Notes under the pieces: generated by a model
What the model was told of the DNA's origin: nothing
Seen by the model: the letters and a program-made list of their open reading frames with translations, nothing else
The model's database searches: none
Virus record (IMG/VR): IMGVR_UViG_3300021338_000003
Coordinates: 186,818-250,817 of that record
Strand: one strand, 5' to 3'
Length of the DNA stretch: 64,000 nt
Part shown: positions 11,701 through 61,484 of the stretch, piece after piece
Numbering within the stretch: position 1 is the stretch's first letter
Layout of the letters: each line of letters begins with the position of its first letter
Program-made: the position numbers and the translations under genes

Positions 11701-12693
11701 TTCGTTCAGGGCATGAAGACCGGGCAGTCCCGGGCAGGGCAACACTATGTGTACGCTGTCCCCAATCAGCTGCAGTCAGACAGGTCTATTCCCCGAATGA
11801 TGACCATTGATGCCGGGGAGGTCAACAACTCTTTCGCCCTGAGCATCTGGTCTGTTGCTCGGGCCAAGTCTCCTGATGTCATGGGTGCCAGGGAGGAGGA
11901 CCTTGGGTATGAGGAGGAAGAGGATGAAGATGTTCGTCGCATCCTTGCACTTCGGGATGAATACGAGGAGGAGGAAACCCAAAGCGAAGGCTCTAAGGGT
12001 ATGTCCGACTACCTCAACCTTGATGGTATCATCGAGGTCATCCCTTTCAAAGACCAGGCTGGTAACCACCACAAGGTCAATTTTAAGAAGATGTACGACC
12101 TCTGCCTATTGCCCCTGGTGAGAAGCCTCAATGTCAAGCTTCTAGTGGCCGACCGGTGGAACATGGCCTCTATCTTTGATGGTCTGAGAGACGAGGGGGT
12201 TGATTGTCACCACTTCACCCTGAAGTGGAAGGACTTCATCGATTTTAAGCAAAAGCTTTCCTCCCGAGAGGTACAATTGCTTGGGTTGGAGAAGCCATAT
12301 GAGTCTATCTTCGACGATTATGAACGGGCCATCTTCAACGCCCCCAACCTCCACCTTGTGGTGCAAACCAAGACCGTGCGACGCACTGGCCGTCAAGTAG
12401 TGAAGCCAAAGGGCGGAACCGACGACCTCTACCGCACCATGGTTCTGGCCCATCGCTTTGCTATGAATGACGACCCCAAGGACCAAGCCTGTGACCCGAA
12501 GGGCGACCCCTATCTGGAAGTCCTGATGAGATATGGCCCCGGTGTGCATCCCCTGAATGCACACCGACCTGGAATCGGTGTAGTCCGTTTGCGGTCGAGC
12601 GGCCGTCCAATAGTCGGAAATAGCCAGGTCCAAGGTGTAGGTGGATTCCACTCGCGTACGCTTTCGGGACGCGCAAGAAAGAAGCGGAGATAG
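8782..12693 (+). CDS. terL: Terminase large subunit with two inteins
   Basis: TTG start; Walker A reconstituted as LGQR|SGKS after intein removal; Walker B MMGIDEIG; nuclease MMTIDAGEVNNSFAL, VADRWN, GGTDDLY; adjacent to portal. Confidence 0.9.
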   Translation: MLSPSALSMSEDDFLMRMFYHVEPEDLEKLYLWAGGDTRKLREFLQIELSSKELARRLYESGVQLMPEDLKRARVESQEAVHKAVAKFSLGDDFDPGELMREAAEKKLDPSVFADMDFREIPKAKNIIDWITNRQFLDAAPFPRQVQFLLALFEEWCFYCSDAEFVKDIHLSPYIGEDGEHRRAWTLDEILERVQLTEHGVCPKCHATYHQTLADPDAPHCAPNDFALCLGQRCVGANTIVPTNQGLSPISRLVPRREPDTFYPTPGLEVASGEGGSLSAESSYYSGVRSAIQIEAECGFSLEASLIHPVLVLRDDKQVWVKASDLNVGDALVVYLGDNVWGDKAEISNQEAYEMGAKVARDPTYWGKREETIFQHRPSVVEAFLRGLQVTKVKNTADSPWSRNQKTTSERVISTPWESLARYVQAAYINMGRFPFVTRKDGKFVIYAGETATEGEWFVRVTSTRFIGDRHLFDFHVPEKHRFVGNGLINHNSGKSRVAEFISSYQNHRFQMLAPTPQRHFGEDRTQQFTAMFTALDLAQSADTLWGNYHIRLQTAPWFKKYHEWLDYHGKKIGVEMYRIKDTYHSWVPTILQDRLKPPFAKAMRGRTGYMMGIDEIGMFAKAENSVRANAEEVFTAMNNTLFTLREASDALNRKAIHTPTALMICVSSPWELLDKIMGLIRGAKDNPRRVAFHFPTWECVAPDTLVLTPEGPLPIGNIAQEEGLRPEYSRVHLGSKNSFGSISHAFRSPKERYVRTITTESGNNLTASLDHRILSIQDDGRIEFTKMMDLNPEDTVLVSWEGLPEPQENSPVPGSTKKLIHRLYVRLGAERDPMANRLRGQATVYDIRTHLAHLERSYPTAFHRNSAQVEELREYFGPYIFTKIFSITEGKSVVCDITVPGDHQYWSNGFISHNCNPKIFRDSKQVVTEYAEDPVKADRDWAAIPPLADNPFHQNTAALDQILEDCRARKPLFVQGMKTGQSRAGQHYVYAVPNQLQSDRSIPRMMTIDAGEVNNSFALSIWSVARAKSPDVMGAREEDLGYEEEEDEDVRRILALRDEYEEEETQSEGSKGMSDYLNLDGIIEVIPFKDQAGNHHKVNFKKMYDLCLLPLVRSLNVKLLVADRWNMASIFDGLRDEGVDCHHFTLKWKDFIDFKQKLSSREVQLLGLEKPYESIFDDYERAIFNAPNLHLVVQTKTVRRTGRQVVKPKGGTDDLYRTMVLAHRFAMNDDPKDQACDPKGDPYLEVLMRYGPGVHPLNAHRPGIGVVRLRSSGRPIVGNSQVQGVGGFHSRTLSGRARKKRR
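9481..10257 (+). mobile_element. Intein 1 in TerL (259 aa, degenerate LAGLIDADG remnant)
   Basis: Starts CVGANTIVPT, ends FVGNGLINHN followed by Ser; inserted within Walker A. Confidence 0.9.
10879..11526 (+). mobile_element. Intein 2 in TerL (216-aa mini-intein)
   Basis: Starts CVAPDTLVLT, block B LTASLDHRIL, ends YWSNGFISHN followed by Cys. Confidence 0.9.
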
Positions 12694-12695
12694 AA

Positions 12696-12983
12696 ATGGC
12701 CAGGAGAAAAACGGATAGGCTTTCTGCTCTAGAACGAGCCGGCTTTCGGACTGGTGAGGCTCGCAAAAACTCCTATGACCAACTTGTAGAGGCATCCCAC
12801 AAGAATCGGATCGAGGCTTTTGTCTATACTCATCCCTCTGGAACTTCCCGGGAGTCTACCGAGGCTGCCCACAGTTGCCCCCGTTGCGGTAAGGACATGA
12901 ATTGGGTTCGCCTGGCCTCCGAAGAGAAGGCTGGATATTGTGTTCCCTGCCGCTACACTCTTCCGGTGCCCCAGGACGACTGA
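12696..12983 (+). CDS. Small Zn-ribbon protein
   Basis: CPRCG...CVPC; lies between terL and portal with a TGATG coupling. Confidence 0.6.
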   Translation: MARRKTDRLSALERAGFRTGEARKNSYDQLVEASHKNRIEAFVYTHPSGTSRESTEAAHSCPRCGKDMNWVRLASEEKAGYCVPCRYTLPVPQDD

Positions 12984-15034
12984 TGTTCAAGACATTCTCG
13001 AATGACAAAAGGTCTGTGTTTGGGTCCGGAACCCCTGCACACGCCATCCGCAAGTCCAAGGGGGCAGCAGCTGTCACCGCCGGCAATATTCGTCGGTCCA
13101 AAAACAGTGAAAGGGACTTCATCAACAAGGTGGTTACTGCCCAATCCGACTTCGGGCTGGACCGATACAACCCGGTGCACGATGACCTTGAGGAAGGATC
13201 GGTTGTTGAGAACTGGGTCCCAAAGGACCTCCCCAGTCTCAATCGGCTGATGCGCCGCATCTATCGTCGAGACGATGTCGGCGGCCCAATGGTCGACATC
13301 TATCAGGAAATGGCATGGTCAGACTACGATCTGACCGGCATGGAAGACGAGGCCATGTACGAGCCATATGCTCAGTCCCTGGCCAACCTCAACCCTATGG
13401 ACTGGATGCCTGATATTTCAAATACCGTCTTGGTGGACGGTCGCGGTATCTATGGTCTCCTGTTCGATGAGGCTGAGGGGGTATTCACAGGCTCTGTCCC
13501 TCATGATTCCTCCTTCTGTCGAATCACCCCTGTCCCTATCTTCGGGCAGGACCCCTTGGTTGACATCCAGGCCAGCCCGGTGTGGCGCAACTTCGCCACC
13601 AGCAACGACCCTCGTATGGCGGAGATGCGAAGCTCCCTGCCCCCGAACATTCTCAAAGTTCTTCGAGACAACACGGGATATACCCCCCTTGATCCTCTGA
13701 GCACCGTCATTGTACGTCGGCAAGCTTCGGCTCATGACCACCTAGGAACCTCAATATACACCCGCCTCATCAACTTCATTGCCATCCAGAAGGCTCTAAT
13801 TGATACCACTGTCATAGCCCTTCGTCGGCGTGGCGCTGGCCTCCTGCATATCCAAGTTGGCAACGAGGTGTGGGAACCTACTGATGACCAGTTGGACGCC
13901 ATCGCCGCCATGTGGATGGGTGCCGAGGAGGACCCGGGCGGTGGTGTTGTGGTGACTCGCAACGGAATCCAAGCAGACCGAAGCCAAAGTGCTGTTGGTG
14001 ACATCTGGAAATTCAGTGACGAATATCCCTTCCTATCCGAGGGGAAGATGCGGTCCTTGGGAATTTCCGATGCCTTTCTATCTGGGGATGCCACGTACAA
14101 TAACATGGCCAACGCCCTGTCGGTCTTCATGGAGCGTCTGCGTGGTTTCCGCATGCGCATCACGAACAAGGTGCTAGTGCAGCGGGTGTTCCACACCCTG
14201 GCTCGGGTCCACGGATATATCAAGCCCGAAAAGAACTCCCCGCAGGGTCGCCGTCAAGCCTTCTTGATGCCTCTACGTCAGGCCCTCGAAGTCCCTGCTG
14301 ACCGCCTCATTGTGCCTGACATCCATTGGCACAAGAGCCTTCAGCCTCAGGGTGATGAGGAGCTGATCCGTCTCCTTGAAACCCTGAAGGAGAACGGACT
14401 GCCGGTCACCAAGCAGCACTTCGCTGCTGCCGCCGGGTTCAACCTCAACAAAGCCATGGATATGCTTGAGGATGACATCAAGCAGGAAGAGGAAGTTCGG
14501 AAGTGGCGAGCTGAGATTGAAGGTGGTGACGAGGAAGGGATTTTTGGTCGGGTCCGTCTCGTACCCCACACCATCCAGCAAATCAAGAAGCCTCGGGAAC
14601 TCCGTGTTGCAGCCTCGAAGGCCCTGGAGGACCTCGGGTTCTTCCGGAACGGACCCTTCCTGGGACTATCTCTCCAGCGTGCCCAACGGGCCCTAGACCG
14701 GATGCTACCCGACCTGAAGAGGGATGGAGAACGGGCACCCTTGCGGACCATCATGGCCGATGTTGACCTGGAACGAGAGCAACGCAATGTTATGCGCTAC
14801 CTCTTGGTCCGACTAGGCTTCGCACCCTCCTACCAAATGAACGACCAGCGCCTCGAAAGAGTGGCTCGGGCTATTGCACAAGCGCTCCCGGCCCGTGAAG
14901 CCCACCAGGAGATTGAGCTTCTAGTGAAGGTCTGCGGGGGTAAGAAGGAGCATTACGCCGAGCGCGTAACACGTCTCCCTAACGGTCCGAGTGGGGCTCA
15001 TCTCCTCACGGGTTATGTTCCGCCAGGAATGTAA
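12983..15034 (+). CDS. Portal protein
   Basis: Position after terL; size; GPMVDIYQEMAWSDY, GTSIYTRL, KMRSLGISDAFLSGDATYNN pattern resembles large-phage portals. Confidence 0.8.
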   Translation: MFKTFSNDKRSVFGSGTPAHAIRKSKGAAAVTAGNIRRSKNSERDFINKVVTAQSDFGLDRYNPVHDDLEEGSVVENWVPKDLPSLNRLMRRIYRRDDVGGPMVDIYQEMAWSDYDLTGMEDEAMYEPYAQSLANLNPMDWMPDISNTVLVDGRGIYGLLFDEAEGVFTGSVPHDSSFCRITPVPIFGQDPLVDIQASPVWRNFATSNDPRMAEMRSSLPPNILKVLRDNTGYTPLDPLSTVIVRRQASAHDHLGTSIYTRLINFIAIQKALIDTTVIALRRRGAGLLHIQVGNEVWEPTDDQLDAIAAMWMGAEEDPGGGVVVTRNGIQADRSQSAVGDIWKFSDEYPFLSEGKMRSLGISDAFLSGDATYNNMANALSVFMERLRGFRMRITNKVLVQRVFHTLARVHGYIKPEKNSPQGRRQAFLMPLRQALEVPADRLIVPDIHWHKSLQPQGDEELIRLLETLKENGLPVTKQHFAAAAGFNLNKAMDMLEDDIKQEEEVRKWRAEIEGGDEEGIFGRVRLVPHTIQQIKKPRELRVAASKALEDLGFFRNGPFLGLSLQRAQRALDRMLPDLKRDGERAPLRTIMADVDLEREQRNVMRYLLVRLGFAPSYQMNDQRLERVARAIAQALPAREAHQEIELLVKVCGGKKEHYAERVTRLPNGPSGAHLLTGYVPPGM

Positions 15035-15270: not shown

Positions 15271-15299
15271 TTGCGTGTTTTGATGTGCCGTGTTATAAT
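15271..15299 (+). promoter_or_regulatory. sigma70-type early promoter P1
   Basis: TTGCGT-17 bp-TATAAT, with gtgccgtgt before the -10 (extended TGn). Confidence 0.8.
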
Positions 15300-18832: not shown

Positions 18833-19063
18833 GTGAAACCCAGAAACGTGGTCCGTCAAGTGGTGCTTACTGCTCTTACCTCCAGAGAAGAGAAATTGGT
18901 ACCTAAGGCCGAGACGTTTCTTATGGACTGGGTATCTGATGGATGGGGCCCTCTACCTCCTGAAATCCAGGCCATCGATGACAAGGGTGCAGAACCACTA
19001 ACCGATGCTGAAAAGAAGGTTCTCGTAGACTGGTTCTACAAGAACGCCCCGGGGAATTACTGA
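18833..19063 (+). CDS. Small hypothetical protein
   Basis: GTG start; TGATG coupling to the next gene. Confidence 0.5.
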   Translation: MKPRNVVRQVVLTALTSREEKLVPKAETFLMDWVSDGWGPLPPEIQAIDDKGAEPLTDAEKKVLVDWFYKNAPGNY

Positions 19064-19902
19064 TGAACCCTCTTGAAAAGATTCTGACCGCCTATACCAT
19101 CGAAGAGCCCCGGGATCGTCCCGAGGAACCCGAATACCCCTTCGAAGCCCAAATCGAGTATCAGGGGCTGGCCCTAGACATCGAGAATCTTAAGGGGAGC
19201 ACTCGATCTGGCGTCGACGAAAATGGTAACAAGTGGGAATCGACCATGTATGCTCACTACGGTGAGCTTCGCGGTCAAAATGCTCCTGACGGTGATTACC
19301 TTGATGTTTTTGTAGGCCCCGAAGATGACGCCCAATGGGTATTCGTGGTCCACCAGGTGCACCCGGGCGGGCACGAGAAGGCAGGCCAATTCGACGAAGA
19401 CAAGGTGATGCTGGGGTTCTCTTCTGCGGACGATGCCATCTCCTGCTACCTCAAGCACTATGACCGCCCTGACTACTTCGGTGGAGTGACCATGGTATCA
19501 ATGCCTGAGTTCAAGGCGTGGGTCAGCCATCCAGACTCTGATAGTAAGCCCGTCCAACCACCCGCCCAATGGAAAACCGACTATCTTCGTCCGAGGAAGA
19601 AAGACATGAACATTGAAGCCATGTCCAACCCACTGACCCGGACGAAGGAAATCATCCGGACCCTGGAAGAGAAACTTCGGGCCGCCCAGAAGAAGCTGAA
19701 GAAGGCAAGGGCAAATCACAAGAAGGCCACGACCATCACGCAAAAGGTGCGGTACAACACGGCCGTGAAGTGGCACCAGAAGACCGTCAAAAGCTTGAAG
19801 CAGGAAATCCGCGAGGAAAAGCAAGTCCTCCGAGATGACACCAAGCTTTTGAAGAAGGAGAAGAAGGCGTCTCTTGAAACGGTGATCGCCAAGTTCTCAT
19901 AG
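19063..19902 (+). CDS. Inorganic-pyrophosphatase-like (InPase) domain protein with a basic coiled-coil tail
   Basis: IENLKGSTRSG..W...M.AHYGEL..PDGDYLDVFVGP...VFVVHQ...FDEDKVMLGF is the InPase signature found in phage polyvalent proteins. Confidence 0.8.
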   Translation: MNPLEKILTAYTIEEPRDRPEEPEYPFEAQIEYQGLALDIENLKGSTRSGVDENGNKWESTMYAHYGELRGQNAPDGDYLDVFVGPEDDAQWVFVVHQVHPGGHEKAGQFDEDKVMLGFSSADDAISCYLKHYDRPDYFGGVTMVSMPEFKAWVSHPDSDSKPVQPPAQWKTDYLRPRKKDMNIEAMSNPLTRTKEIIRTLEEKLRAAQKKLKKARANHKKATTITQKVRYNTAVKWHQKTVKSLKQEIREEKQVLRDDTKLLKKEKKASLETVIAKFS

Positions 19903-19903
19903 G

Positions 19904-19932
19904 TTGACATATCTGTTGTGCCATGTTATAAT
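19904..19932 (+). promoter_or_regulatory. Perfect consensus sigma70 promoter P2
   Basis: TTGACA-tatctgttgtgccatgt(17)-TATAAT. Confidence 0.9.
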
Positions 19933-19952: not shown

Positions 19953-20885
19953 ATGAGCATCAAGAAGGTCATCGAGAAGTACGAAACCACCGCTTCTATG
20001 AGCCGCCAGGACTTCAACCAAGCCGTTCAGAAGGTTTGGGGAGGAGAAACCCCGGAGGGGTTGGTTGTCATCAGTCCCACTGAGTTTGCGTCCCACAGGG
20101 GGCTGTCATCTGACGCAAAGTCGATGATTCGAAAAGAACCGAAGGTGCCGGATACCAGACACCGCGGTCGGACGGAGTGGCTTCCATCTCAGTATATCCA
20201 GAACTGGGATTGGAACAATGGTGGTCTCTCCATCAGTTGGAACTGGGAGCAGAGGAAGGTCATCCTTCCCGAGGGGTGGGAGGACGACCGCAAGTTCATT
20301 CGATCTGTCAATGACTTCTATACCGCAGTGAAGGAGCAACTCCGGGTCACCGAGGAGGGGTGGATTGTCTACTCCTCTCGGGGCATCGTAGGGAGTGTGT
20401 CCCGACAATTTGGGGTTTCTATGAACCGTGCCGAGGCCGTCTTTGAAAAGAACAAGGATGAAGCTCTCCGGCAGACGGAAATCATGAGGATTCGACTGCC
20501 CATCGCCAGTCCTGTGAATGGGAAGGTCCTCATGATTCGCGACGAGCAAAGCGTAGTCGACTTCCTGGGGACCAAGCTCAAAAAGTCTCCTGACTTGTAC
20601 GTGTACGTCGAAGGATATGCCGAGGCCCCCCAAGACCCGGATGAGGAAGTCGATTCCTACAGCGCGTTTGATGGGTGGTCTCAGAAGGACCTCATCCTCG
20701 AACACATTGCCGACATTGATGCATTCGAAGCTGACCGCGACGGGCATTCGGTCATGGCCCTGTGCGGTCCCTTCAAGAGCGCGGCTGCAAAAAGAGCCTT
20801 CATGAAGAAGATTGGCCTCAGCTCAAGGCAAGAGAAGAAGAACCGCGAAACCGCCAAGGCATACGGAACCTTCCAGTCCTACTAG
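19953..20885 (+). CDS. Hypothetical protein with the MSIKKVIEKYETTAS leader
   Basis: GGAG SD; member of the shared leader family. Confidence 0.7.
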   Translation: MSIKKVIEKYETTASMSRQDFNQAVQKVWGGETPEGLVVISPTEFASHRGLSSDAKSMIRKEPKVPDTRHRGRTEWLPSQYIQNWDWNNGGLSISWNWEQRKVILPEGWEDDRKFIRSVNDFYTAVKEQLRVTEEGWIVYSSRGIVGSVSRQFGVSMNRAEAVFEKNKDEALRQTEIMRIRLPIASPVNGKVLMIRDEQSVVDFLGTKLKKSPDLYVYVEGYAEAPQDPDEEVDSYSAFDGWSQKDLILEHIADIDAFEADRDGHSVMALCGPFKSAAAKRAFMKKIGLSSRQEKKNRETAKAYGTFQSY

Positions 20886-21372: not shown

Positions 21373-21774
21373 ATGAGCATCAAAGAAGTAATTGCAAAGT
21401 ACAAAGTCACTGCCTCGGGCCATGATCAAGAGATGATTAGCCATAGTCATGACTGGGTCAAATATGTTGACACAGAGGGGTGGGATCGACTATGGGATGA
21501 CAGTCTCAGACACGTCGCTCCCGAGGGCTACCTCAGGCATATTGAAGATGATGACTTGCAGTACCACATCATCATCTGGCTTGATGAAAGACTCTATGAC
21601 TTCTTGAAGGAGAAGGGCATGGAGATAGACGGAAGAAAGTGGGATGAGGACCTCTCGCAAGCTAGACAAAAGATGATAGAGGTTGCTTGCAGAAAGTCCG
21701 ACATACTTGAAGGACGTATCAGGCCAGAAGAAATAGAGAAGGTTATCAAGAGCATACCCGATTACATCACCTGA
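21373..21774 (+). CDS. Hypothetical protein with the MSIKEVIAKYKVTAS leader
   Basis: AGGAG SD before the ATG at 21373. Confidence 0.7.
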   Translation: MSIKEVIAKYKVTASGHDQEMISHSHDWVKYVDTEGWDRLWDDSLRHVAPEGYLRHIEDDDLQYHIIIWLDERLYDFLKEKGMEIDGRKWDEDLSQARQKMIEVACRKSDILEGRIRPEEIEKVIKSIPDYIT

Positions 21775-21819
21775 GGTTCCTGGGCGCTAGGTGGAAGATA
21801 TCAAATGAGGTATCTTCCT

Positions 21820-22686
21820 ATGTCCAAGATGATCACAGGACTGGCAGAAATCGACCCCTACAACCCTCTTGTGGTGTTGGAGGGGTCGAAGATTATCGAG
21901 GAAGTGCGCGAGTCTATCGTGGGGTCGGGCTCCGATCGGAGACTTGAGCGTACCGCGGTTGTGGCTTCTACCACCGAGGGTGGGTCCATCAAGCGGCGCC
22001 CCATGGATGTGTCCTGGCTGGCTGGCGCCAGTGAGGCATACAATATATCAGCCGATGTCCGGGACTACATCTTCGTTAATGTTCCGATCGTCACGGCCGA
22101 TTTCCCTAACCGAAACATGGACTGCTTCACGTATGAGGAGCTGACTACTTTCAGCCCAGTTCTGGGTCGCTTCGTCTACGGGTCTTTCAAAGCCAAGCCG
22201 ATGCACCTCAACCACAAGAACAAGAACCCCCTAGAGGCCAAGGGGGTCCACTTCGATGCCACACTCCGGAAGTACAAAGTATGGCCTGGGAAGCAAGGGT
22301 ATCAGAGCAACAACACCCAGCCTCGCGAACTCTGGAAGGTTCGGGTCATGTTGGGAGCTTGTCGCCAGAAAGACCCCAAGGTTGCCCAGAGCATCCTTGA
22401 CAAAAAGCGCACCGGGTATTCTATGGGTGCCTGGATCGACCACGCCTTCTGCTCGGTCTGCCACAATGACAACATGCGCCAGAAGTGCACCCACCGCCAG
22501 CGGGGCAAGGGTTCCATTTCCGCTGACGGCCGCTTGGTATATGACTGCGTGGCTGGTGTCAACTTCTTCGAAACCTCGGTCCTCGATGAAGAGCCGGCAG
22601 ACCCTGATGCCTGGGCTCCCGATGGTGTTTGGGCCCCACACCTGCAGCCCAACATCTGGGCATCCTCCTTGGAGGCTGTGCTGTGA
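21820..22686 (+). CDS. Prohead protease (jumbo-phage type, with Zn-binding insert)
   Basis: PNRNMDCF, MHLNH, YSMGAW..FCSVC...C.H, FFETSVLDEEPADPDA; upstream of scaffold and MCP. GAGGT SD before 21820; ORF track start is 21805. Confidence 0.75.
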   Translation: MSKMITGLAEIDPYNPLVVLEGSKIIEEVRESIVGSGSDRRLERTAVVASTTEGGSIKRRPMDVSWLAGASEAYNISADVRDYIFVNVPIVTADFPNRNMDCFTYEELTTFSPVLGRFVYGSFKAKPMHLNHKNKNPLEAKGVHFDATLRKYKVWPGKQGYQSNNTQPRELWKVRVMLGACRQKDPKVAQSILDKKRTGYSMGAWIDHAFCSVCHNDNMRQKCTHRQRGKGSISADGRLVYDCVAGVNFFETSVLDEEPADPDAWAPDGVWAPHLQPNIWASSLEAVL

Positions 22687-22970
22687 GCGACTATATATAC
22701 CTTGAAGTCACCGTTCTGGTCAGGCACCCCGAGAAGTTCGAGGGATTCAACTTCGAAAATGCAGCAAAGGACCTGGGCCTTTCACCTGACCGGCGAGGAA
22801 ACACCCTCCCTATTCGCACTGACCCTAGAATGGCCAGTGTTCACTTCTGGGGTCGATTCCCTATGGGGCCCGGGCTGCAGGACTCCATTCAGAGGCGTGC
22901 CGAGTCCGCACTCAGTCCCCTGGGCGTGCGTCGAGTTATCATCAGAGCACCTACGCCGAGGTTCATGTGA
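22683..22970 (+). CDS. Small hypothetical protein
   Basis: GTGA overlap with the protease stop. Confidence 0.5.
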   Translation: MSDYIYLEVTVLVRHPEKFEGFNFENAAKDLGLSPDRRGNTLPIRTDPRMASVHFWGRFPMGPGLQDSIQRRAESALSPLGVRRVIIRAPTPRFM

Positions 22971-23554
22971 CTATCCGCCATATCATCCGGGAGCAAATGG
23001 AAATCGAGGCTGCTGTCCCCGCCTGGCTGGCGTCCATGGGTGGAGCCGCAGTTGCCGTCGGTCTTCGTTTTGCCTTGAAGAAGGTGCTCCAGTCTGCGAT
23101 GAAGGCCATGGCCAAGCAAGCAGCCAAGAAGGCTGCCCAGCAGGGCGCGAAGAAAATCACCCAGAAGGGTGCCCAGAAGGTATTGATGAATCCGAAGGTT
23201 ATCAAGCCGGCCATGCGGAGAAAGATTGCTCAGAAGGGTATATCCGATTCCGAGATTGATGAGGTCATCAAAAACATGGACTCGTCAGTGGGCGAGAAAG
23301 CCCAGAAACTCGTGTTCTCCTATCTGGTTGAGAAGGGTACAGCCAACAAGACCCTAACCGAACAGGATGTGGCAGACCTCAAGGCCGGAAAGGCTCCGAA
23401 GGGTACCACTTCTCCTACCGCCAGTGGGAAGAAGGGAAAGAACGGCGAAAAGCCCCCGAAGGGCTACGAAAAAGTCAAGAGTAGCAAGAAAAATGCATAT
23501 CGTCGCAAAAAGGACGATGGCACGTACGACTACTGGTACCCCTCCAAGAAGTGA
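22967..23554 (+). CDS. Basic hypothetical protein with a leader ending IEAA, then a hydrophobic VPAWL segment
   Basis: MTIRHIIREQMEIEAAVPAWLASMGGAAVAVGL; shares this segment with ORF 34450..35310. Confidence 0.65.
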   Translation: MTIRHIIREQMEIEAAVPAWLASMGGAAVAVGLRFALKKVLQSAMKAMAKQAAKKAAQQGAKKITQKGAQKVLMNPKVIKPAMRRKIAQKGISDSEIDEVIKNMDSSVGEKAQKLVFSYLVEKGTANKTLTEQDVADLKAGKAPKGTTSPTASGKKGKNGEKPPKGYEKVKSSKKNAYRRKKDDGTYDYWYPSKK

Positions 23555-26724: not shown

Positions 26725-27237
26725 ATGCGCTACCTGAATGACATTCTAGCCAAGATAATCTTGGTTCGTGATTCCCTTCGGGAGAAGGGTCAGCAGAAGC
26801 ATGCTGCTGACCTGGACGCTCACGCGGGCGCACTATACTTCCTCGGGGCTGGAGACAGCTCCGAAATTACCTCTCATGCACCTGATACCTCTGATTCCGA
26901 GCGGGTGGCTCGACTGTCTGGCCAAGAAAAGGCCAGACTGCGCCGCCTCAAAAAGAGAAGGGCCAACAAGCGTCCTGCGCGTAAGCGCTATGTCTGTTGC
27001 ACCCCTCTCGAAAAGCGTCGTACCCGTCGTGGGACGGCGTGGGCTAGCGTCTGTCACTATGTAGTCACGAGTGGAAAGCGTCGTGGTCAAATGGCCGCTT
27101 CCTCTATCATGGTCTCCTACGGAAATCAAAAACCGAAGGCAATCATCGTCAAAGAGAGTGGTCGTGATCGTCGAATGAGCTTCTGTCGAAGTGGTCAACT
27201 AGAGCGGGCAAAAGCCAAGTTCGCAAAGAAAGCCTGA
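26725..27237 (+). CDS. Basic hypothetical protein in the head cluster
   Basis: Arg/Lys-rich C-terminal half. Confidence 0.55.
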   Translation: MRYLNDILAKIILVRDSLREKGQQKHAADLDAHAGALYFLGAGDSSEITSHAPDTSDSERVARLSGQEKARLRRLKKRRANKRPARKRYVCCTPLEKRRTRRGTAWASVCHYVVTSGKRRGQMAASSIMVSYGNQKPKAIIVKESGRDRRMSFCRSGQLERAKAKFAKKA

Positions 27238-27261: not shown

Positions 27262-28443
27262 ATGGCAAACCCCTACGGAAAGTTTTCGGGTGCTACCACC
27301 CAGATGGTGCTTGCGGGCACTGATGCTCCGGTTGTGAGTGAAGCTCGCAACTTCGGTCGCACTGTCACTGGCTCCGTCCAGCAGTCCGGCTCCGGCCTTG
27401 CGCCCACCTCCCGTGGCCTAGCCCACGGTGGCGGTGAGCGTCTGTTCGGCGCCAATGGCGAGATCAATGCCTCCAGCAAGCGCGAGCTGATGGAGAAGAT
27501 CGGCCTCCTGCTTGACCAAGCCCAGCATGGTGGCTTCGAGCGCCAGATGACCCCCGAGTACAGCCGTGTGGCCCAGGCCCGTGCTGTTGCTCTCGCCGAA
27601 GCCCAGGCCAACCCCGACGGTCCCGGCATGCGGATCATCGCCGAGGCGACCGGCAACGAGGTCTTCGAGACTCTCGGCCGTGATGGTCTCGTGCGTCAGT
27701 TCCTCCTGATCAACGACCTCAATGGTAGTGACGACGTCAACCGCGTCAAGGTCCGGAAGAAGGACGTGTCCGCGGTCATCTCAACCACGAACATCAACAC
27801 CACCAAGCAGATGGTTCGCCAGATGTGGGTGTACCCGGGCGAGTACTACGTCAAGTCCTTCGTCTCCATTGAGGAGAAGGAGCTGTCGCAGAACGGTGCC
27901 GAGATGCTCGACGAGAAGTTCACGGACATGCTTGAGCAGCACATGGTCCAAGAGGACCGGCACATGAAGAGCCACTTCGATGACCAGGTGGGTATCGTCA
28001 ACCCCGGGCTGACCTTCAACAAGTTCACCCCGCTCATCTTCACCCAGGCTCGCGTGGCTGTCGAGGAGCAGGGCAACCCCTGTGTCCGCGCTGCCCTCTC
28101 CTGGGACCTCTGGGTCGACATTCTCGCTGAGCCGGAGTTCGCCAACTACTTTGACCCGGTCCACAAGCACGCTGCCATCCTCGATGGCAAGCTCGGCGCC
28201 ATCCAGAACGTCCAGCTCTACACCGACGGCTTCCGGTACGATACCCTGCAGGTGCTCGGCACCCGTGAGGTCTACTTCACCGGTCCGGCGGCTACGGTCG
28301 GTGTCCTGGGTCAGCGGAGCCCGATCCAGACGAAGGAGACGGATCGCTACAACCTCGGCCAGGCCGAGCGTGGATGGTTCTCCTTCCAGATCCAGTCCAT
28401 GACCACGTTCCCCCGTGCCGTGAGCCGCGCTCGCGGTATCTGA
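27262..28443 (+). CDS. Major capsid protein
   Basis: 393 aa; follows protease, scaffold and decoration genes; extreme C-ending codon bias; strong terminator; HK97-like size. Confidence 0.8.
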   Translation: MANPYGKFSGATTQMVLAGTDAPVVSEARNFGRTVTGSVQQSGSGLAPTSRGLAHGGGERLFGANGEINASSKRELMEKIGLLLDQAQHGGFERQMTPEYSRVAQARAVALAEAQANPDGPGMRIIAEATGNEVFETLGRDGLVRQFLLINDLNGSDDVNRVKVRKKDVSAVISTTNINTTKQMVRQMWVYPGEYYVKSFVSIEEKELSQNGAEMLDEKFTDMLEQHMVQEDRHMKSHFDDQVGIVNPGLTFNKFTPLIFTQARVAVEEQGNPCVRAALSWDLWVDILAEPEFANYFDPVHKHAAILDGKLGAIQNVQLYTDGFRYDTLQVLGTREVYFTGPAATVGVLGQRSPIQTKETDRYNLGQAERGWFSFQIQSMTTFPRAVSRARGI

Positions 28444-32419: not shown

Positions 32420-32860
32420 ATGGGCAAAATGAACGTGTCCAAAATCAGTGAAGTAACGGCAAAATACGAAGTCCTTGCAAGCCGTCAAGGAATGCATAAT
32501 GACTTTTTGGAGCGCGCCTACAATATACTAGACGACGCAGGAATTGACAGATCGTCCGTCAAGACTGGAACTCACGGAAGAGACTGGTATTGGGTGAGCT
32601 TCGAACTTCCGAAGGGGGACTTGTGGTACGAGTGGAGACCCGGTATCGTCTCTCCAGAGACCCAGTCCGGGGAGTCTATCACACTTCGACGGAGGCACAG
32701 ACATAGCAGGCACCCGTCATCCCCCTCTTCCTTTGGGGACGCCCTGGTGAATGTATACAACCCTGCAGAATCCTCCTTCGGGGATGTCTGGCTCTCCGAC
32801 CAAGATATCAGAAATGCCCATTCCGATATCTTGGACGTAATCGAAGGAAAGTACCTCTGA
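32420..32860 (+). CDS. Hypothetical protein with a leader variant (SKISEVTAKYEVLAS)
   Basis: GGAG SD; member of the leader family. Confidence 0.65.
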   Translation: MGKMNVSKISEVTAKYEVLASRQGMHNDFLERAYNILDDAGIDRSSVKTGTHGRDWYWVSFELPKGDLWYEWRPGIVSPETQSGESITLRRRHRHSRHPSSPSSFGDALVNVYNPAESSFGDVWLSDQDIRNAHSDILDVIEGKYL

Positions 32861-32911: not shown

Positions 32912-33775
32912 ATGGGATACGAACAGGCACTTTCGACCAAGAAGCTGGCCACCCACTGCATCCTGTGTGGTCAGCCGCTCCGGGACCCCATCTCGGTTGA
33001 GACTGGTGTTGGTCCGATTTGTCGTGCCAAGAACGGCTACAATGAGGCTGGCAACCCCGAGACCCGTGTCCAGTGTAGCAAGCTCATCCATGCTGCTGCT
33101 CAGCCGGGCTTGACTGCCACCGAGGTCTACGACTACGCCGACCAGATCGAGGCCCTCGGGTTCCCTGATGTGGCCGCCAAAATCCGGGAACGGTTCCATC
33201 GGGCCTACGAATACGAGCAGCGGGGAACCCTCCCAATCAAGATGAAGAGGGAGAATTACCGCCAGTGGACCGACGCCATCTGGATGCACATCCCCTACGA
33301 TGCCGAAACAACCAAGAAGTTCAACCAAGCCTTGAAGGACCGCATTTGGTCCAGTTATCGGACGGGCACGAAGGATGACACTGGAACTTTCTGGTGGATC
33401 GTCGACCCGAAGCGGGCTGACGCCGTCGACGCTCTCCTCCGGGAGTTCTATACCGGTCGTATGTGCCACTCCTCGTTCGGAGACTTCATCATCGGCGAGG
33501 AACTCGGAGGTGGTGATACCGAGAAGGCCCCTCAGGAGGAAGCCCCTCCAGTCCCTGGTCCCCCTGCAGCGACGCCCGGAGCCTCTACCCCCTCGTTTGG
33601 AGGTAGTGGCGGAAAGGGAGGCAGCGGCGGCGAGTGGACCCCCATCCCCGGCCCGAGCGGATCCAAGACGTCGACCCCCGATGACCCCATCACCCCCTCG
33701 CGCAGCCCCCGTGAGGTGGCCGCGGAGCGTGGGCGTGCCCGGGCCGAAGAACTTTTGAAATCTCTGGGATTGTGA
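32912..33775 (+). CDS. DUF6011-like Zn-binding early protein
   Basis: CILCGQPLRDPISVETGVGPICR signature; AGGAGG SD; Pro/Gly/Ser-rich tail. Confidence 0.65.
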   Translation: MGYEQALSTKKLATHCILCGQPLRDPISVETGVGPICRAKNGYNEAGNPETRVQCSKLIHAAAQPGLTATEVYDYADQIEALGFPDVAAKIRERFHRAYEYEQRGTLPIKMKRENYRQWTDAIWMHIPYDAETTKKFNQALKDRIWSSYRTGTKDDTGTFWWIVDPKRADAVDALLREFYTGRMCHSSFGDFIIGEELGGGDTEKAPQEEAPPVPGPPAATPGASTPSFGGSGGKGGSGGEWTPIPGPSGSKTSTPDDPITPSRSPREVAAERGRARAEELLKSLGL

Positions 33776-34374
33776 TGGACCCTCGGCTACTACCCTTCGA
33801 CACCTGGTACAAAGCCAGGTTGCGCTCCGACGCCCCCAAGGATGTGGCCGACATTTTCCGAGGCCACACCAGGCCCTTCGTATATCTGCTCCGCACCCCA
33901 AGCAACATTCCAGTGCCCCGCTTCAAATTGGGCCGATTTGTTGCCTGGAGCGGGGCAGATCGTACCCATGGTCACCTGACCGCGGAAAAGATTAGGGACT
34001 CCTTCGAAATCCTTCAGGTCCATGACGACCAGGAAAACCTCAATGAACGGACCAAGAGATTGTTCCGCAGGAAAAAGCAAATGAGCAAGATGGACGAAGT
34101 TGTTGCGAAGTACGAGAACGAGGTCACAGCCTCCCAGAATGGCCAATTCTACAACGATGAGGGGGAGGAACTTGACGCAGAAGAAGTTGAGAGTCATGTC
34201 GAAGCCACTCTCAAGGAGTTGGAGAAGCTCAAGAAGCAGACAGAAGACTTCCAACGTAAGCTCAAGGCCGGCAGTCTGAAAACGGAGGATGGGTTTATGT
34301 CGTTCATGTCCGTGATCATCCATGGGTATGACCAAACGGGACCTGTGGGCATCAGCTTCGAGTCCAACGATTAG
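33772..34374 (+). CDS. Hypothetical protein with a probable internal second start at 34081 (MSKMDEVVAKYENEVTAS)
   Basis: The internal ATG is preceded by AGGA and begins a leader-family peptide. Confidence 0.55.
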   Translation: MMDPRLLPFDTWYKARLRSDAPKDVADIFRGHTRPFVYLLRTPSNIPVPRFKLGRFVAWSGADRTHGHLTAEKIRDSFEILQVHDDQENLNERTKRLFRRKKQMSKMDEVVAKYENEVTASQNGQFYNDEGEELDAEEVESHVEATLKELEKLKKQTEDFQRKLKAGSLKTEDGFMSFMSVIIHGYDQTGPVGISFESND

Positions 34375-34396
34375 CCGTCCTTCCTAGAGACGGTTG

Positions 34397-34425
34397 AGCC
34401 CCGGTAGGATAATCCCTCCGGGGCT
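34397..34425. terminator. Hairpin between convergent genes
   Basis: agccccgg-13 nt-ccggggct followed by tattt. Confidence 0.65.
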
Positions 34426-34449
34426 TATTTGTATTCAGTCAAGATTGAA

Positions 34450-35310
34450 TCAGCTGGACATCTTCCAGCCTTCGTCATCCTCCAATTCGGACATAGCCTT
34501 CTCCCAATCCGATGGGTGAACCTTCAGGGCCCGCATGGTCTGGTTCATTTCATTGGATACCTGACGAGTGTTGGTAATGGCCCGTCCAGCCAGGGACAAA
34601 CGTTCGGTAACCTTGATTACATCCTTGAGGATGTCGGTCTTCGAACGACTGTAGAGGTAGGGAATGAGACGGCCGATGGCCACCGACATCACGACAGCAG
34701 TGGCTGCCATACCCACGTCTTTGATGAGCCCTACCTTGAGGTACTTGAGAACTCCACGGGCCAGGCTATCTACGACACGACCAGCACGGTCCTTGCGCTT
34801 CTGAAGAAGGGTGTTGTTGACCGAGGCAGCTGTCTTGAAGAAGACTTCCAAGTCACGCTCGGAAGCAGACGTTCCCAGGGCTCCCAGGAGCTGGGATATA
34901 GCCTCGACATTTCCAGCCATTTCATCTTTCCAGAAGGTTACCATGGTGCGGAGGTACAAGGTCAGAACACGCATCAGGACGGTCACTGCGAGGTAGGCCC
35001 CTGCCTGCCCCAGCCATGCCGGGATGGCGGCCTCGACCTGCTTGCGCTCAATGAGATGGGACAGTCGAGTGGCAGCCGTGGCCTTGGTCTTACCGTCGGC
35101 ACCAGGCTCGTCCTTGGAATTCCACTCATCATCGACCTCTTCGAAGAAGTCCTTCTTCTCGCTGTCAGACAGGTCCGAAATCTCATCGATTCCATGCTCC
35201 TTCATCTGACCCTTCATATAATTCTGCCAGTCCTTCTCATGCTCGGTCGTGGCAGGATTTCCATCCTTAGCCACCCGGTAGCGATCGACGACATCTTTGA
35301 TCGACATCAT
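34450..35310 (-). CDS. Hypothetical protein with the MSIKDVVDRY leader and internal VEAAIPAWL
   Basis: AGGAG SD; start overlaps the upstream stop. Confidence 0.7.
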   Translation of the reverse strand: MMSIKDVVDRYRVAKDGNPATTEHEKDWQNYMKGQMKEHGIDEISDLSDSEKKDFFEEVDDEWNSKDEPGADGKTKATAATRLSHLIERKQVEAAIPAWLGQAGAYLAVTVLMRVLTLYLRTMVTFWKDEMAGNVEAISQLLGALGTSASERDLEVFFKTAASVNNTLLQKRKDRAGRVVDSLARGVLKYLKVGLIKDVGMAATAVVMSVAIGRLIPYLYSRSKTDILKDVIKVTERLSLAGRAITNTRQVSNEMNQTMRALKVHPSDWEKAMSELEDDEGWKMSS

Positions 35311-35801
35311 GTCTCCTGGTATTTGCGGATGACTTCGCGAAGACATGCCACCCGGGCGAATGTTGTTTCGACTATATCCACCAAGGCGTCTTTTCCTTGG
35401 TCAGACACGAAATCCACTACCGATCCGTACCCGGACTGGGCACGAACAGTCAGCACCATGCGCCCCACGTCCTGGGACGTCACATCCGGACCACGCCAAA
35501 CAGCATGGACCAAAAGCGAATCCAGGTCCATCAATGGGACCCGGAGCTGGCCGAGGGCCTGCTTCGTGGCCCTCCACTTGTAGTGGTTGGTTACCTGGGG
35601 CGGAGCGGGGTTCATGTCCGCCAAAGCCCGGTCGAAGGGGAGCGCAGCCTCAGAAGTCAAAGCCGCCTCTTGGACCCGCATGTCCACTAGTCCACGAGCA
35701 AACTCCGGGAGTTCACTGTAGGCCAGATACGAGTCCGCCAATGAGGAGGCGAAAACCACCTGCATCATTGGCGAAAGAAAGGGTCTCACGGCCAACCCCA
35801 C
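35307..35801 (-). CDS. Hypothetical protein
   Basis: Coupled ORF on the minus strand. Confidence 0.5.
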   Translation of the reverse strand: MGLAVRPFLSPMMQVVFASSLADSYLAYSELPEFARGLVDMRVQEAALTSEAALPFDRALADMNPAPPQVTNHYKWRATKQALGQLRVPLMDLDSLLVHAVWRGPDVTSQDVGRMVLTVRAQSGYGSVVDFVSDQGKDALVDIVETTFARVACLREVIRKYQET

Positions 35802-46121: not shown

Positions 46122-46508
46122 ATGAGCATCAAAGAAGTCATCGCAAAATACAGCATCCAAGCTAGTGCGTCAGAATGGAGTATTGGTATATATGATACCA
46201 ATGGAAACCCCAGCAAGAAGTTCAAATCACTTCCTGATAACCCCTCCCAAGAAGACGTCGCTAGAGCGTCCGAAGGTAGTGGTGGCAGGGACTACATAAG
46301 TGTCTTCAAGTCAGGAAGAGACTGGGCTGTGATGGCAGGGACTTATGGTCCCAGAGATATCGCGTTCTATGTTGTGGCATTGAAGGGCAAGCACAACAGC
46401 ATCGCCTCTGACATCGAGAATGCTGTGCATACCCTAGAGGACTTCGACCCCTACGACTACACCGAGGAAGAAGTCGTAACGGCAATCATGAGACACTTCA
46501 AATTGTGA
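46122..46508 (+). CDS. Hypothetical protein with the MSIKEVIAKYSIQAS leader
   Basis: Leader DNA is 27/30 identical to that at 21373. Confidence 0.7.
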   Translation: MSIKEVIAKYSIQASASEWSIGIYDTNGNPSKKFKSLPDNPSQEDVARASEGSGGRDYISVFKSGRDWAVMAGTYGPRDIAFYVVALKGKHNSIASDIENAVHTLEDFDPYDYTEEEVVTAIMRHFKL

Positions 46509-55631: not shown

Positions 55632-57833
55632 ATGAACCACGCACCTTCGTCTGACGCCGGAATCGAAGAGGTTCAACCGATTTCAGTGGAAGAGCACAAG
55701 GTTCAATTTCCAAACGCCCTGTCTCAATTCGTCTTCACTCGAACTTACCCTCGCTGGAGAGAGGAAGACCAGCGCCGTGAGACTTTCGAGGAATCGGTTG
55801 AGCGCTATGTGACGTTCATCAAGGAAGAAAGGCCCAAAGTTCCCGCCGAGGTTCTGACCGAAATCAAGAACGCCTTGTTGTCCATGGAAGTGGCCCCGTC
55901 AATGCGCGCCTTCTGGAGTGCCGGACCGGCCGCCAAACGTGACAACACAATGTTCTACAATTGTTCTTTCATTCCCTTGGATTGCTTGCCCAGCTTTGGT
56001 GAGCTTCTATATGTTCTGATGATGGGCACTGGGGTTGGATACTCGGTTGAATCCAAATTCGTCAACAACCTCCCTACTGTGGCGAAGCCTATAGACGTTC
56101 CCCCTGAGTATATGGTGATACCAGATACCACCAAGGGATGGATGGATGCTCTCACCAAGGGTATGACTGCCTGGTACCAGGGCAGAGACATAACCTTCGA
56201 CTTTTCGAAGATTCGCGAGGCTGGTGCCCGTCTCAAGACCAAGGGTGGTCGTGCCTCCGGTCCCCAACCACTCAAGAATCTCCTCAATTTCACCAAGAAG
56301 GTCATTCAGGGTGCCATCGGCCGGAAGCTCTTCACCGTCGAGTGCAACGATATTGCCTGCATGGTTGGCGAAATTGTTGTGGCATCCGGTGTTCGCCGTT
56401 CTGCTCTTATCTCCTTCTCTGATCCGACCGACAACAAAATGCGGGATGCCAAGAAGTTCCCCATCTGCCAGGAATGCGGATTCGGATATGCCACGCATCT
56501 CTCCCAGGTCACTAATGAGATAGGCGTGGTTGTCACAGACCACGAGAAGGCCCACCTCATGGAGGAGCATGGAATGACCGAGGCCGAGTATCTGGAGAAA
56601 CATCCGGATGCCTACCTTGGGTTTGGGATGCACCGGTTCCTAGCCAACAATTCAGCATTCTGGTCCGAAAAGCCGAGCCGGGATATCTTCGATACTGAGT
56701 GGAAGGCCCTTCGTGATTCTGGGTCCGGCGAGCGTGGATTCTACTTCTTGCCCCCGGCCAAGGTAGCAGAGCGCGGTACCGCCGATATGAGGTCCAACCC
56801 ATGTGGTGAAATTCTCCTCCGCTACGCCATGGCTACGAACCCCTGGACGGGTGAAGGCGGTGGTGGTCAATTCTGCAACCTCAGCGCGGCCATCATGCGC
56901 CCATGGGACACCGTCGACACCATGGCCAAGAAGGTATACATCGCCACCTGGATTGGGGCCATCCAGTCTACCTTCATTGATTTCCCACACCTTCGCCCGG
57001 CCTGGAGAAAGCACTGCGAAGAGGACCGCCTGCTTGGCGTGGATATCACTGGCCATTGCGATAACCCGGCTCTATCCACCGACGAATTCGCCATGAAGGC
57101 CCTCAACACAATTGCCAACTCCACCGCCAGTATAGCCTCGGGTATCCTGGGAATCAACGAACCGAAGAGTGTTACCTGTGGAAAGCCCTCAGGTAACAGC
57201 AGCCAGTTGTTCGACTGCGCCTCTGGGTTCCATACCCGCTACGCTCCCTATTACATCCGACGCGTTCGGGTGTCGGCTACCGACCCCCTGTTCCAGCTGA
57301 TCCGGGACTCTGGTGTCCCCGTCCATAAGGACAACAAGTATCAGTCCTGGAACGACGCCGATTGCCCAACCTGGGTTGCTGAGTTCCCGGTCAAATCCCC
57401 GGAAGGTGCCATGACCCGGGACGACGAAGGAGCGATCGGTCAGCTCAACCGATACCTCCAGGTGATGAGAACCTGGATATCTACCCGAGGGCACAACCAG
57501 TCTGCTACCGTCTACGTCCGTGACCATGAGTGGGATGAGGTTGGTGACTGGTTGTTCGAGAATTGGAACCACGTCACGGGTCTATCCTTCCTACCCTATG
57601 ATGGCGGAAAGTACAGTCTGGCTCCTTACGAGGCTATCACCAAAGAGCAGTACGAAGCCCTGGTCAAGGACTTCCCAGATGTGGACTACAACCTCCTCCA
57701 ATTCTATGAGAAGGAAGACATGGGGCAAGGCAGTCAAGAGCTTGCCTGTGTCGGCGGGAGCTGCGAGGTCGATTGGTCAATCGGTGACGAACCTCCTCCC
57801 CTGGACGATATAGACGCTCTCGAAAGCAAGTAA
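55632..57833 (+). CDS. nrdJ: Class II (B12-dependent) ribonucleotide reductase, monomeric type, with a Zn-finger insertion
   Basis: FTRTYPRW..RETF, FYNCSF, SNPCGEI, FCNLS, KPSG, C-terminal LACVGGSCE; no NrdB nearby. Confidence 0.9.
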   Translation: MNHAPSSDAGIEEVQPISVEEHKVQFPNALSQFVFTRTYPRWREEDQRRETFEESVERYVTFIKEERPKVPAEVLTEIKNALLSMEVAPSMRAFWSAGPAAKRDNTMFYNCSFIPLDCLPSFGELLYVLMMGTGVGYSVESKFVNNLPTVAKPIDVPPEYMVIPDTTKGWMDALTKGMTAWYQGRDITFDFSKIREAGARLKTKGGRASGPQPLKNLLNFTKKVIQGAIGRKLFTVECNDIACMVGEIVVASGVRRSALISFSDPTDNKMRDAKKFPICQECGFGYATHLSQVTNEIGVVVTDHEKAHLMEEHGMTEAEYLEKHPDAYLGFGMHRFLANNSAFWSEKPSRDIFDTEWKALRDSGSGERGFYFLPPAKVAERGTADMRSNPCGEILLRYAMATNPWTGEGGGGQFCNLSAAIMRPWDTVDTMAKKVYIATWIGAIQSTFIDFPHLRPAWRKHCEEDRLLGVDITGHCDNPALSTDEFAMKALNTIANSTASIASGILGINEPKSVTCGKPSGNSSQLFDCASGFHTRYAPYYIRRVRVSATDPLFQLIRDSGVPVHKDNKYQSWNDADCPTWVAEFPVKSPEGAMTRDDEGAIGQLNRYLQVMRTWISTRGHNQSATVYVRDHEWDEVGDWLFENWNHVTGLSFLPYDGGKYSLAPYEAITKEQYEALVKDFPDVDYNLLQFYEKEDMGQGSQELACVGGSCEVDWSIGDEPPPLDDIDALESK

Positions 57834-59946: not shown

Positions 59947-60339
59947 ATGTTCGATTCGATCAAGAAGATCAAGGACAAGAAGTCCAGGAAGATGCTGGAA
60001 TACCTTTCGTACGGGTTCGAAGGGGAAGGAGAACGTCTGTTCGACTTCCTGGTTCACCTGGCCCACGTCGTTGGGGAGGGCGGAAACATCACCAGCCATG
60101 GCTACACCACCACGGTTCAACCCAGCCATGGGGAGTGGGAAGCAACCCTCGTTGTGGTTGGGAGGCAGGACGGGAAGTTCTCTGCAGTCCTGATTTGGGC
60201 AACCATCTGTGGAAAGGCAGAGGTGGTCCTCGATGGGATGTTTGGTCCTGACCGAGGGTCATCCCTGGCTGACGCCGTCATCAAGGCGGTGCGGGACCAC
60301 ACCACCAAGATCGGCTGGCATACGCCGGTGGACTTCTAG
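59947..60339 (+). CDS. Early hypothetical protein
   Basis: AAGGAG SD before ATG 59947. Confidence 0.65.
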   Translation: MFDSIKKIKDKKSRKMLEYLSYGFEGEGERLFDFLVHLAHVVGEGGNITSHGYTTTVQPSHGEWEATLVVVGRQDGKFSAVLIWATICGKAEVVLDGMFGPDRGSSLADAVIKAVRDHTTKIGWHTPVDF

Positions 60340-60352
60340 ACGATCCTCATAC

Positions 60353-60381
60353 TTGCGCCTCCTTGCATGCCATGTTATAAT
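60353..60381 (+). promoter_or_regulatory. sigma70-type early promoter P7
   Basis: TTGCGC-ctccttgcatgccatgt(17)-TATAAT. Confidence 0.85.
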
Positions 60382-61145: not shown

Positions 61146-61484
61146 ATGAGCAAGATGAATGGCTTTGGGGTAGCATTTGAGTCCGAAGGCGACTTCTACG
61201 GTATGGAGGGGGCCATCCAGGAGATGCAAAGTGCCACTTGCGGTGCTATCTTCGATGGGCGCGGGGAACTCATAGTCGTTACAAACGACGAGCGATGCAG
61301 CCTAGAAGACTTCATCTCGGAATACGGCAGGATGTATGGCGAGAGCTATGCCCCCAGCAAAAAAGAAGTGGTGAAGACACATAACGTGACCGGAGACGTC
61401 ACTGCCACGAGCAAGATGGATGAAATTGTGGCGAAGTACAAGAACGAAATCACGGCGGCGGGGGACATTCGTTTGAAGGACTAG
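61146..61484 (+). CDS. Hypothetical protein ending in a copy of the leader peptide
   Basis: AGGAGG upstream; C-terminus TSKMDEIVAKYKNEITAAGDIRLKD. Confidence 0.55.
   Translation: MSKMNGFGVAFESEGDFYGMEGAIQEMQSATCGAIFDGRGELIVVTNDERCSLEDFISEYGRMYGESYAPSKKEVVKTHNVTGDVTATSKMDEIVAKYKNEITAAGDIRLKD

Follow-up and report, generated by a model that had tools for sequence, protein, structure and literature searches.

A 17-residue leader peptide common to eight otherwise unrelated proteins of a seawater jumbo phage: a putative head-targeting tag

Terminal tags in described systems and the phage under study

Encapsulins load unrelated cargo into an HK97-fold shell by means of a short terminal peptide that may stand at either end of the cargo protein, and phage-borne polymorphic toxins of the MuF type, which combine a constant N-terminal part with variable C-terminal parts, are thought to ride in the phage head. 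The leader family described here differs from the encapsulin system, to whose peptides it is not known to be related in sequence, in belonging to a tailed phage with terminase, portal and protease, and from the MuF type, with its domains of hundreds of residues, in having a constant part of 15-20 residues; no toxin domain was found in the proteins scanned. The internal proteins of phage T4 have in common only an N-terminal targeting propeptide of 10-19 residues, which lets them bind the core and is cleaved off by gp21, while Alt is also processed at its C-terminus, and the carriers of such propeptides are non-core genes that vary between related phages (PMC9026906, PMC3012670). In phage P1, an N-terminal packaging signal directs DarB into the capsid for delivery to the host, and the N-termini of the Dar proteins have no common consensus (PMC9024508).

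The window analysed in this study, i.e. the whole stretch of 64 kb, is the end of a single 250,817-bp contig with 54% G+C that represents an uncultured jumbo tailed phage from a seawater metagenome. Near-identical DNA was present in three seawater metagenome samples, and the contigs of these samples (4,001 bases examined) contained no variants over the parts covered, to which the leader barely belonged. The nearest cultured relatives, with 27-31% capsid identity, are jumbo phages of Pseudomonas, Erwinia, Achromobacter and others. Operons of small genes are headed by a regular host-type promoter (TTGC/TTGACA, 17-nt spacer, GTGCCA-TGTTATAAT) that was found at window positions 15291, 19924, 58649, 59203 and 60373 and at 11 more sites elsewhere in the genome; in public assemblies, contigs break or join at these promoter repeats. 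The large terminase ORF is 1303 aa long and matches the terminase profile in three separate stretches, and it possibly contains an intein or another insertion. Faint intein signals were observed in the portal genes of relatives.

The nearest relatives found were seven metagenome contigs with 54-62% capsid identity. They have in common with the phage analysed here the portal and protease genes, a gene of 187-228 aa, an acidic protein of about 800 aa and a protein of 250 aa, and furthermore a basic protein of 170 aa, the capsid protein and the four genes after it. Neither the leader nor a comparable shared N-terminus was found in the seven contigs, and since these relatives have the same head genes without the tag, head assembly in itself does not require it. 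No leader-carrying relatives were detected by megablast against phages or by a capsid-based scan of IMG/VR viral contigs. In viral contigs, one leader DNA pattern matched two contigs, with the peptide lying within a protease-capsid fusion, and a second leader DNA pattern had zero matches. Two related IMG/VR contigs contain the nonapeptide KMDEVIAKY (L001, 7238-7264; L002, 954-980, minus strand), in L001 within a 676-aa ORF after a Peptidase_S78 prohead protease domain and before the apparent capsid part; it may be a coincidence or a hint of a scaffold-like helix. A scan of metagenomes with the leader pattern returned the phage's own contig and 17 unrelated contigs (L011-L028). Fourteen of these 17 matches were Cys-containing small proteins beginning with MTIKEVI.KYPET, which by eye we take to be DUF1858-like, and were set aside as unrelated. 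The 17 unrelated matches indicate that chance estimates from base composition understate matches to common protein motifs. Judged by the sequences searched, the leader is restricted to this 250.8-kb seawater jumbo phage.

The leader family and its genomic context

Eight copies of the leader were identified in the genome by six-frame scans and by searches with profiles made from the respective other copies alone. Apart from the copy at 61407, which is treated below, they scored 23-28 bits, and the best background match reached 4.7 bits. The leader is a 17-residue module consisting of an amphipathic helix of two and a half turns, with hydrophobic residues at i, i+3, i+4 and i+7 and an EVIAKY-like core, and of a VTAS-like motif that follows after a gap of 1-5 variable residues. 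Six copies are N-terminal, and all six have ribosome-binding sites, whereas one copy is internal (34081) and one lies at the C-terminal end of its protein (61407; Table 1). In an all-against-all comparison of 897 candidate N-termini, the leader was the sole shared N-terminal peptide family of the genome. Past the first 20-30 residues the carrier proteins are unrelated, and the reuse of the leader with unrelated bodies, which had been proposed in a preceding sequence-only reading of this DNA, is supported.

Table 1. Leader copies, leader-like tails and neighbouring features, in window coordinates except where the genome position is given
Feature	Position	Strand	Remarks
Large terminase	8782-12693		
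Portal	12902-15034		
Weak leader-like tail of InPase-domain protein 19063-19902	19870..19899	+	10.4 bits, rank 6/2018
Leader, N-terminus of 310-aa gene 19953-20885	19953..19997	+	24.0 bits; sigma70-like promoter at 19924
Leader, N-terminus of 133-aa gene 21373-21774	21373..21417	+	28.4 bits; AGGAG site before
Head maturation protease	21805-22686	+	phrog_18299, E 3.6e-44; conserved in relatives
Major capsid protein	27262-28443		
Diverged leader near N-terminus of gene 32420-32860	32435..32482	+	25.2 bits
199-codon ORF with internal leader	33775..34374	+	public gene call, 199 aa
Leader internal to 199-aa ORF	34081..34134	+	residues 103-120; 28.3 bits
Leader, N-terminus of 285-aa protein (35307 down to 34450)	35263..35307	minus	23.5 bits
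Leader-like tail of gene 35801-35307	35310..35342	minus	16.2 bits, rank 1/2018
Leader, N-terminus of 128-aa gene 46122-46508	46122..46166	+	27.4 bits
Ribonucleotide reductase	55632-57833		
Sigma70-like promoter	60335..60381	+	TTGC..., 17-nt spacer, extended -10; heads three-gene operon ending with 61146-61484
Orphan gene, 112 codons	61146..61484	+	AGGAGG site 9 nt upstream; leader copy near C-terminus
Eighth leader copy	61407..61460	+	residues 88-105 of 112-aa 61146 protein
Tail after leader	61461..61484	+	7 codons and TAG stop
SbcD-like nuclease	62536-61481	minus	
Leader at gene start	genome position 154048		preceded by host-type promoter

In pairwise comparisons of the eight 8-codon cores, first, second and third codon positions differed on average by 0.23, 0.15 and 0.58, respectively, and 35% of the identical residues were written with different codons. 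Ser is encoded by AGC or TCG among the copies, and Lys is replaced by Arg written CGC. The much higher variability of third positions compared with first and second positions indicates that selection keeps the peptide, and the near saturation of synonymous positions argues against recent conversion or transposition and for a high age of the copies. Stretches of DNA common to copies measure only 14-39 nt and lie entirely within the coding sequence of the leader. By this codon pattern it is the peptide, not the DNA, that is conserved, and the copies are old. We regard it as secure that the leader is a real, peptide-selected and phage-specific module.

The internal copy had been described as lying in frame inside a larger ORF with an AGGA sequence of its own, and this description proved correct: the ATG of the 199-aa ORF at 33775 overlaps the stop of the upstream gene, and a coding signal in the same frame begins at about 33780 and runs across the 103 codons upstream of 34081. 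The AGGA, a plausible internal ribosome-binding site, stands 7 nt before the internal ATG at 34081, so that a separate, putative 97-aa product starting at this position is possible. A homologue search with the 33772 ORF retrieved nothing beyond the gene call of this ORF itself, and an AF2 model of this ORF (pLDDT 49) was too poor for use. Between the convergent leader genes 34081 (+) and 35307 (-), a GC-rich hairpin with a T run is found at 34385-34430, which is probably a two-way terminator.

Leader-like ends had also been pointed out at the C-termini of 19063..19902 (LETVIAKFS) and 35307..35801 (LREVIRKY). Both exist as written and rank high with a PSSM of the 8-residue core among 2018 C-terminal windows (Table 1), but they are weak, as both score at background with an HMM built from the N-terminal copies. 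The tail of 19063-19902 ends 51 nt before the leader gene 19953, and the stop of gene 35801-35307 overlaps the start of the leader gene 35307. A relationship of the two tails to the leader is suggestive only.

Five of the eight leader copies cluster around the head genes, and several of them lie in variable islands around portal, maturation protease and capsid. The 6.7-kb island between portal and protease, an interval that contains zero or one gene in the relatives, holds the leader genes 19953 and 21373 and two host-type promoters; gene 21373-21774 is situated directly upstream of the head maturation protease gene. The leader genes 32435, 34081 and 35307 lie past the conserved capsid-proximal block. 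The portal-protease island also contains gene 19063-19902, whose product combines an InPase domain (PF18823, E 4e-39) with a long, basic coiled-coil tail behind it. Matches to this product were found within very large phage proteins that carry the annotation minor head protein or DarB-like. The PF18823 InPase domain is typical of virion-delivered polyvalent proteins. Outside of the head region, the leader gene 46122 is found two genes downstream of a 1740-aa SNF2-type helicase protein. The 285-aa leader protein (34450-35307, minus strand) and the conserved head-module gene 22967-23554 have a hydrophobic segment, EAA.PAWL, in common (E 2e-05), and both proteins look membrane-active. The acidic 722-aa protein adjoining the maturation protease is presumably scaffold-like. 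The conserved basic 170-aa protein encoded upstream of the capsid gene (26725-27237) begins with a helix that may be leader-like, LNDILAK, and its homologue in contig L008 begins with LDEIVAK.

The C-terminal copy in gene 61146-61484

The similarity between 61407-61460 and 34081-34134 noted in the sequence-only reading was confirmed, with 43 of 54 nt identical and no such match in shuffled sequence. A degenerate 30-nt pattern matched only these two sites of the genome, at 0.00 matches expected from 100 shuffles, and blastn within the genome aligned the 61407 copy with the 34081 region over 35/39 nt (E 1e-06). The two peptides are identical in 13 of 17 residues and similar in all 17 (E 4e-07). 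Chance is excluded as the source of this match. With an HMM built from the seven other copies only, the 61407 copy scored 15.7 bits (E 0.0035), against a background maximum of 4.7 bits. Its helix is preceded by VTAT and closes with ITAA, and the position of the start codon is occupied by ACG, with a GGAG 11 nt before it. All five amino-acid replacements relative to the 34081 copy are conservative, which we count in favour of a C-terminal helix that may still function.

The gene that contains this copy is the third one of the operon transcribed from the host-type promoter at 60373, after a cREC_REC-domain gene, and it has small orphan genes as neighbours, at a large distance from the head module. 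Its coding signal is even and in one frame throughout up to the stop. At its TAG stop codon, the gene overlaps with the stop codon of the SbcD-like gene, which is convergent to it, within CTAG (61481-61484), and an intergenic terminator between these two genes is absent. The first four codons together with the 2 nt upstream are the same as the 34081 start (14/14 nt, 34079-34092), and four starts of this kind exist in the genome. In an AF2 model of the 61146 protein, obtained from the single sequence and of low confidence (pLDDT 59), residues 7-80 form a small beta/alpha domain, which is followed by a poorly defined linker and by the leader as a separate helix (residues 87-105). No homologues were found in 1.8 or 5.8 billion proteins beyond the protein itself and a 58-aa fragment from the same phage. 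Four other protein matches were long tandem-repeat proteins aligned via a short VTGDVTA-like stretch and were dismissed as artefacts, and the structural matches of an ESM Atlas model (pLDDT 0.41) were unusable.

The sequence-only reading had taken the 61407 copy for an empty cassette. Almost nothing follows the copy, as had been stated, with 7 codons and the stop being all that is left at 61461-61484, but it is not free-standing: it is the C-terminal helix of a 112-codon ORF that has a uniform coding signal and its own AGGAGG site, and the former start position reads ACG. An in-frame fusion is the most likely origin of the gene. A small gene would have been connected in frame with the beginning of a leader gene downstream of it. 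The start codon of this leader gene would since have become ACG, and of its body only 7 codons would remain, the rest having disappeared at the present border with the SbcD-like gene. The coding signal shows no frame switch, and on this basis a recent frameshift as the event that united two genes was rejected. A decayed leader at the N-terminus beyond the first four codons was not significant (p 0.065). Residues 71-88 were considered as a second decayed leader (p 0.001 versus one leader, in a region chosen by eye) and were likewise rejected, as they score at background with the HMM and form a beta strand in the AF2 model.

Candidate processing motif and possible functions of the leader

The end of the leader resembles a motif of the major capsid protein. 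NGEINAS (27454..27474, + strand; capsid residues 65-71) hardly varies among 15 capsid homologues with identities as low as 30%, in contrast to the 60 residues before it, which are variable; the alignment with the PHROG capsid profile starts roughly at this position. In likely coding frames, E[IV][TN]A[SA] was counted 7 times versus 0.7 times expected, i.e. with an approximately tenfold enrichment; three occurrences are leader ends, one is the capsid site and three are found in other proteins (one clamp loader and two unannotated proteins). In addition, ITAS occupies residues 27-30 of the scaffold-like 722-aa protein, where TA is conserved. We put NGEINAS forward as a candidate site at which the capsid protein is cleaved during maturation, and by its resemblance the VTAS-like motif of the leader would be a cut site of the maturation protease.

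Our tentative interpretation, which we consider possible but short of probable, is that the leader acts as a putative targeting or propeptide tag comparable to the T4 capsid targeting sequence (CTS) and works at either protein end. The helix would dock its carrier onto a component of the assembling prohead, and the head maturation protease would then cut off the tag at the VTAS-like motif and release the carrier; this would follow the principle of the T4 CTS, but as an independent invention that is not bound to one end of the protein. We infer docking, cleavage and packaging from the features described above. Counted against this interpretation are the host-type promoters of the 61146 operon and of gene 19953, which would fit early expression, the distance of gene 61146 from the head module, and the shortness of the processing motif together with the occurrence of three of its seven instances in other proteins. 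The absence of the tag from relatives with the same head genes and its dissimilarity in sequence to the T4 CTS also count against it. A complex prediction for residues 1-40 of the 21373 protein versus the protease and residues 150-722 of the scaffold-like protein returned 0.00, which is no answer and speaks neither for nor against binding. The more far-reaching version, in which the leader would be an independently evolved, position-independent loading tag made up of a docking helix and a protease site, at least eight orphan proteins would be capsid cargo delivered to the host and the leader end would display the cleavage specificity of the protease family, in common with the NGEINAS site of the capsid protein, appears somewhat unlikely to us.

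Other explanations need to be weighed against a head tag. In the sequence-only reading, the leader was a recombinogenic or mobile DNA module that swaps cargo, with 61407 as an empty cassette or functionless vestige after deletion of the cargo. Several findings resemble what such a module would leave behind, namely unrelated bodies after the same leader, carriers in variable islands that are absent from the relatives, two other genes that end leader-like directly before a leader gene, and the structure of the 61146 gene itself, which starts with the 14 nt of the 34081 kind, ends with a full leader and in this respect looks like a joining product, with GGAG placed 11 nt ahead of the ACG found instead of a start codon and 7 codons only after the copy. 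However, the copies have no more than 14-39 nt of DNA in common, their synonymous positions are near saturation, and blastn within the genome found no flanking inverted or direct repeats at the 61146 locus beyond the leader itself. Among the scanned neighbours, which comprise part of the neighbours of the copies, there was no match to a recombinase, integrase or homing nuclease. A decaying remnant at 61407 also fits poorly with exclusively conservative replacements and a coding signal that is even to the stop. We therefore consider the cargo-swapping module unlikely, and the mobility of the DNA is the part of the earlier proposal that found no support. Conservation at the RNA level, in the form of a translation-initiation region or a repressor operator of which the C-terminal copy would be a leftover, could account for the location of most copies at gene starts, their A-rich sequence after good ribosome-binding sites and the AGGA retained 7 nt upstream of the ATG at 34081. 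The codon pattern disfavours such a signal, as third positions vary most and residues are kept through unrelated codons; moreover, the conservation reaches 15-20 codons past the gene start, with a distal motif on the far side of a variable gap, whereas the sequences upstream of the starts differ among the copies. We regard this explanation as highly improbable.

The remaining alternative accepts the leader as a peptide, but assigns it to a non-capsid partner: its helix would dock onto a host factor or onto a hub protein of the phage, to which small effectors would be recruited early in infection. The host-type promoters before gene 19953, before the copy at genome position 154048 and before the operon of 61146 would agree with this function, as would the nature of the carriers, which are small orphans typical of early host-takeover genes, and the tolerance of the tag for N-terminal, internal and C-terminal positions. 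On the other hand, it would leave unexplained why five of eight copies lie around the head genes and why the family is linked to the head-module gene 22967 and to the capsid motif, and we judge a non-capsid partner to be unlikely as well. These same links to the head genes count in favour of the interpretation as a head-targeting tag, as do the enriched processing motif, the separate C-terminal helix of the low-confidence AF2 model and the precedents in T4 and P1. If the leader is a loading signal, a 17-residue motif marks the repertoire of injected proteins in a phage lineage in which nearly all such genes are orphans, and the carriers are likely to be counter-defence or takeover factors. If it is not, the leader still defines a docking peptide common to eight proteins.

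Among the known systems, the Dar proteins of P1 resemble the present case in that a large helicase-type protein and a protein with an InPase domain are encoded in the vicinity of leader genes, and differ from it in that here a peptide is clearly common to eight genes. The similarity to the T4 CTS consists in a short terminal peptide that is common to otherwise unrelated small phage proteins, in eight copies here, in carriers that are poorly conserved, non-core genes and vary between related phages, and in a phage that encodes a prohead maturation protease as well as, by our reading of the 722-aa protein, a scaffold-type core. In contrast to the T4 CTS, the leader is not strictly N-terminal, since it occupies residues 88-105 of 112 in the 61407 copy and residues 103-120 of 199 in the 34081 copy, and the presumed cut motif is VTAS-like, whereas the T4 motif ends in Glu. 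The N-termini of T4 ipII and ipIII (NC_000866) did not match the leader HMM, and the alignment gave p 0.48. Given the lack of a sequence relation to the T4 CTS and its occurrence beyond the N-terminus, the leader is to be seen as an analogue and not as a member of that family. As a loading signal it would be a second, unrelated example of the T4 CTS principle, one that tolerates the C-terminal position, and this tolerance would matter for packaging foreign proteins into phage heads.
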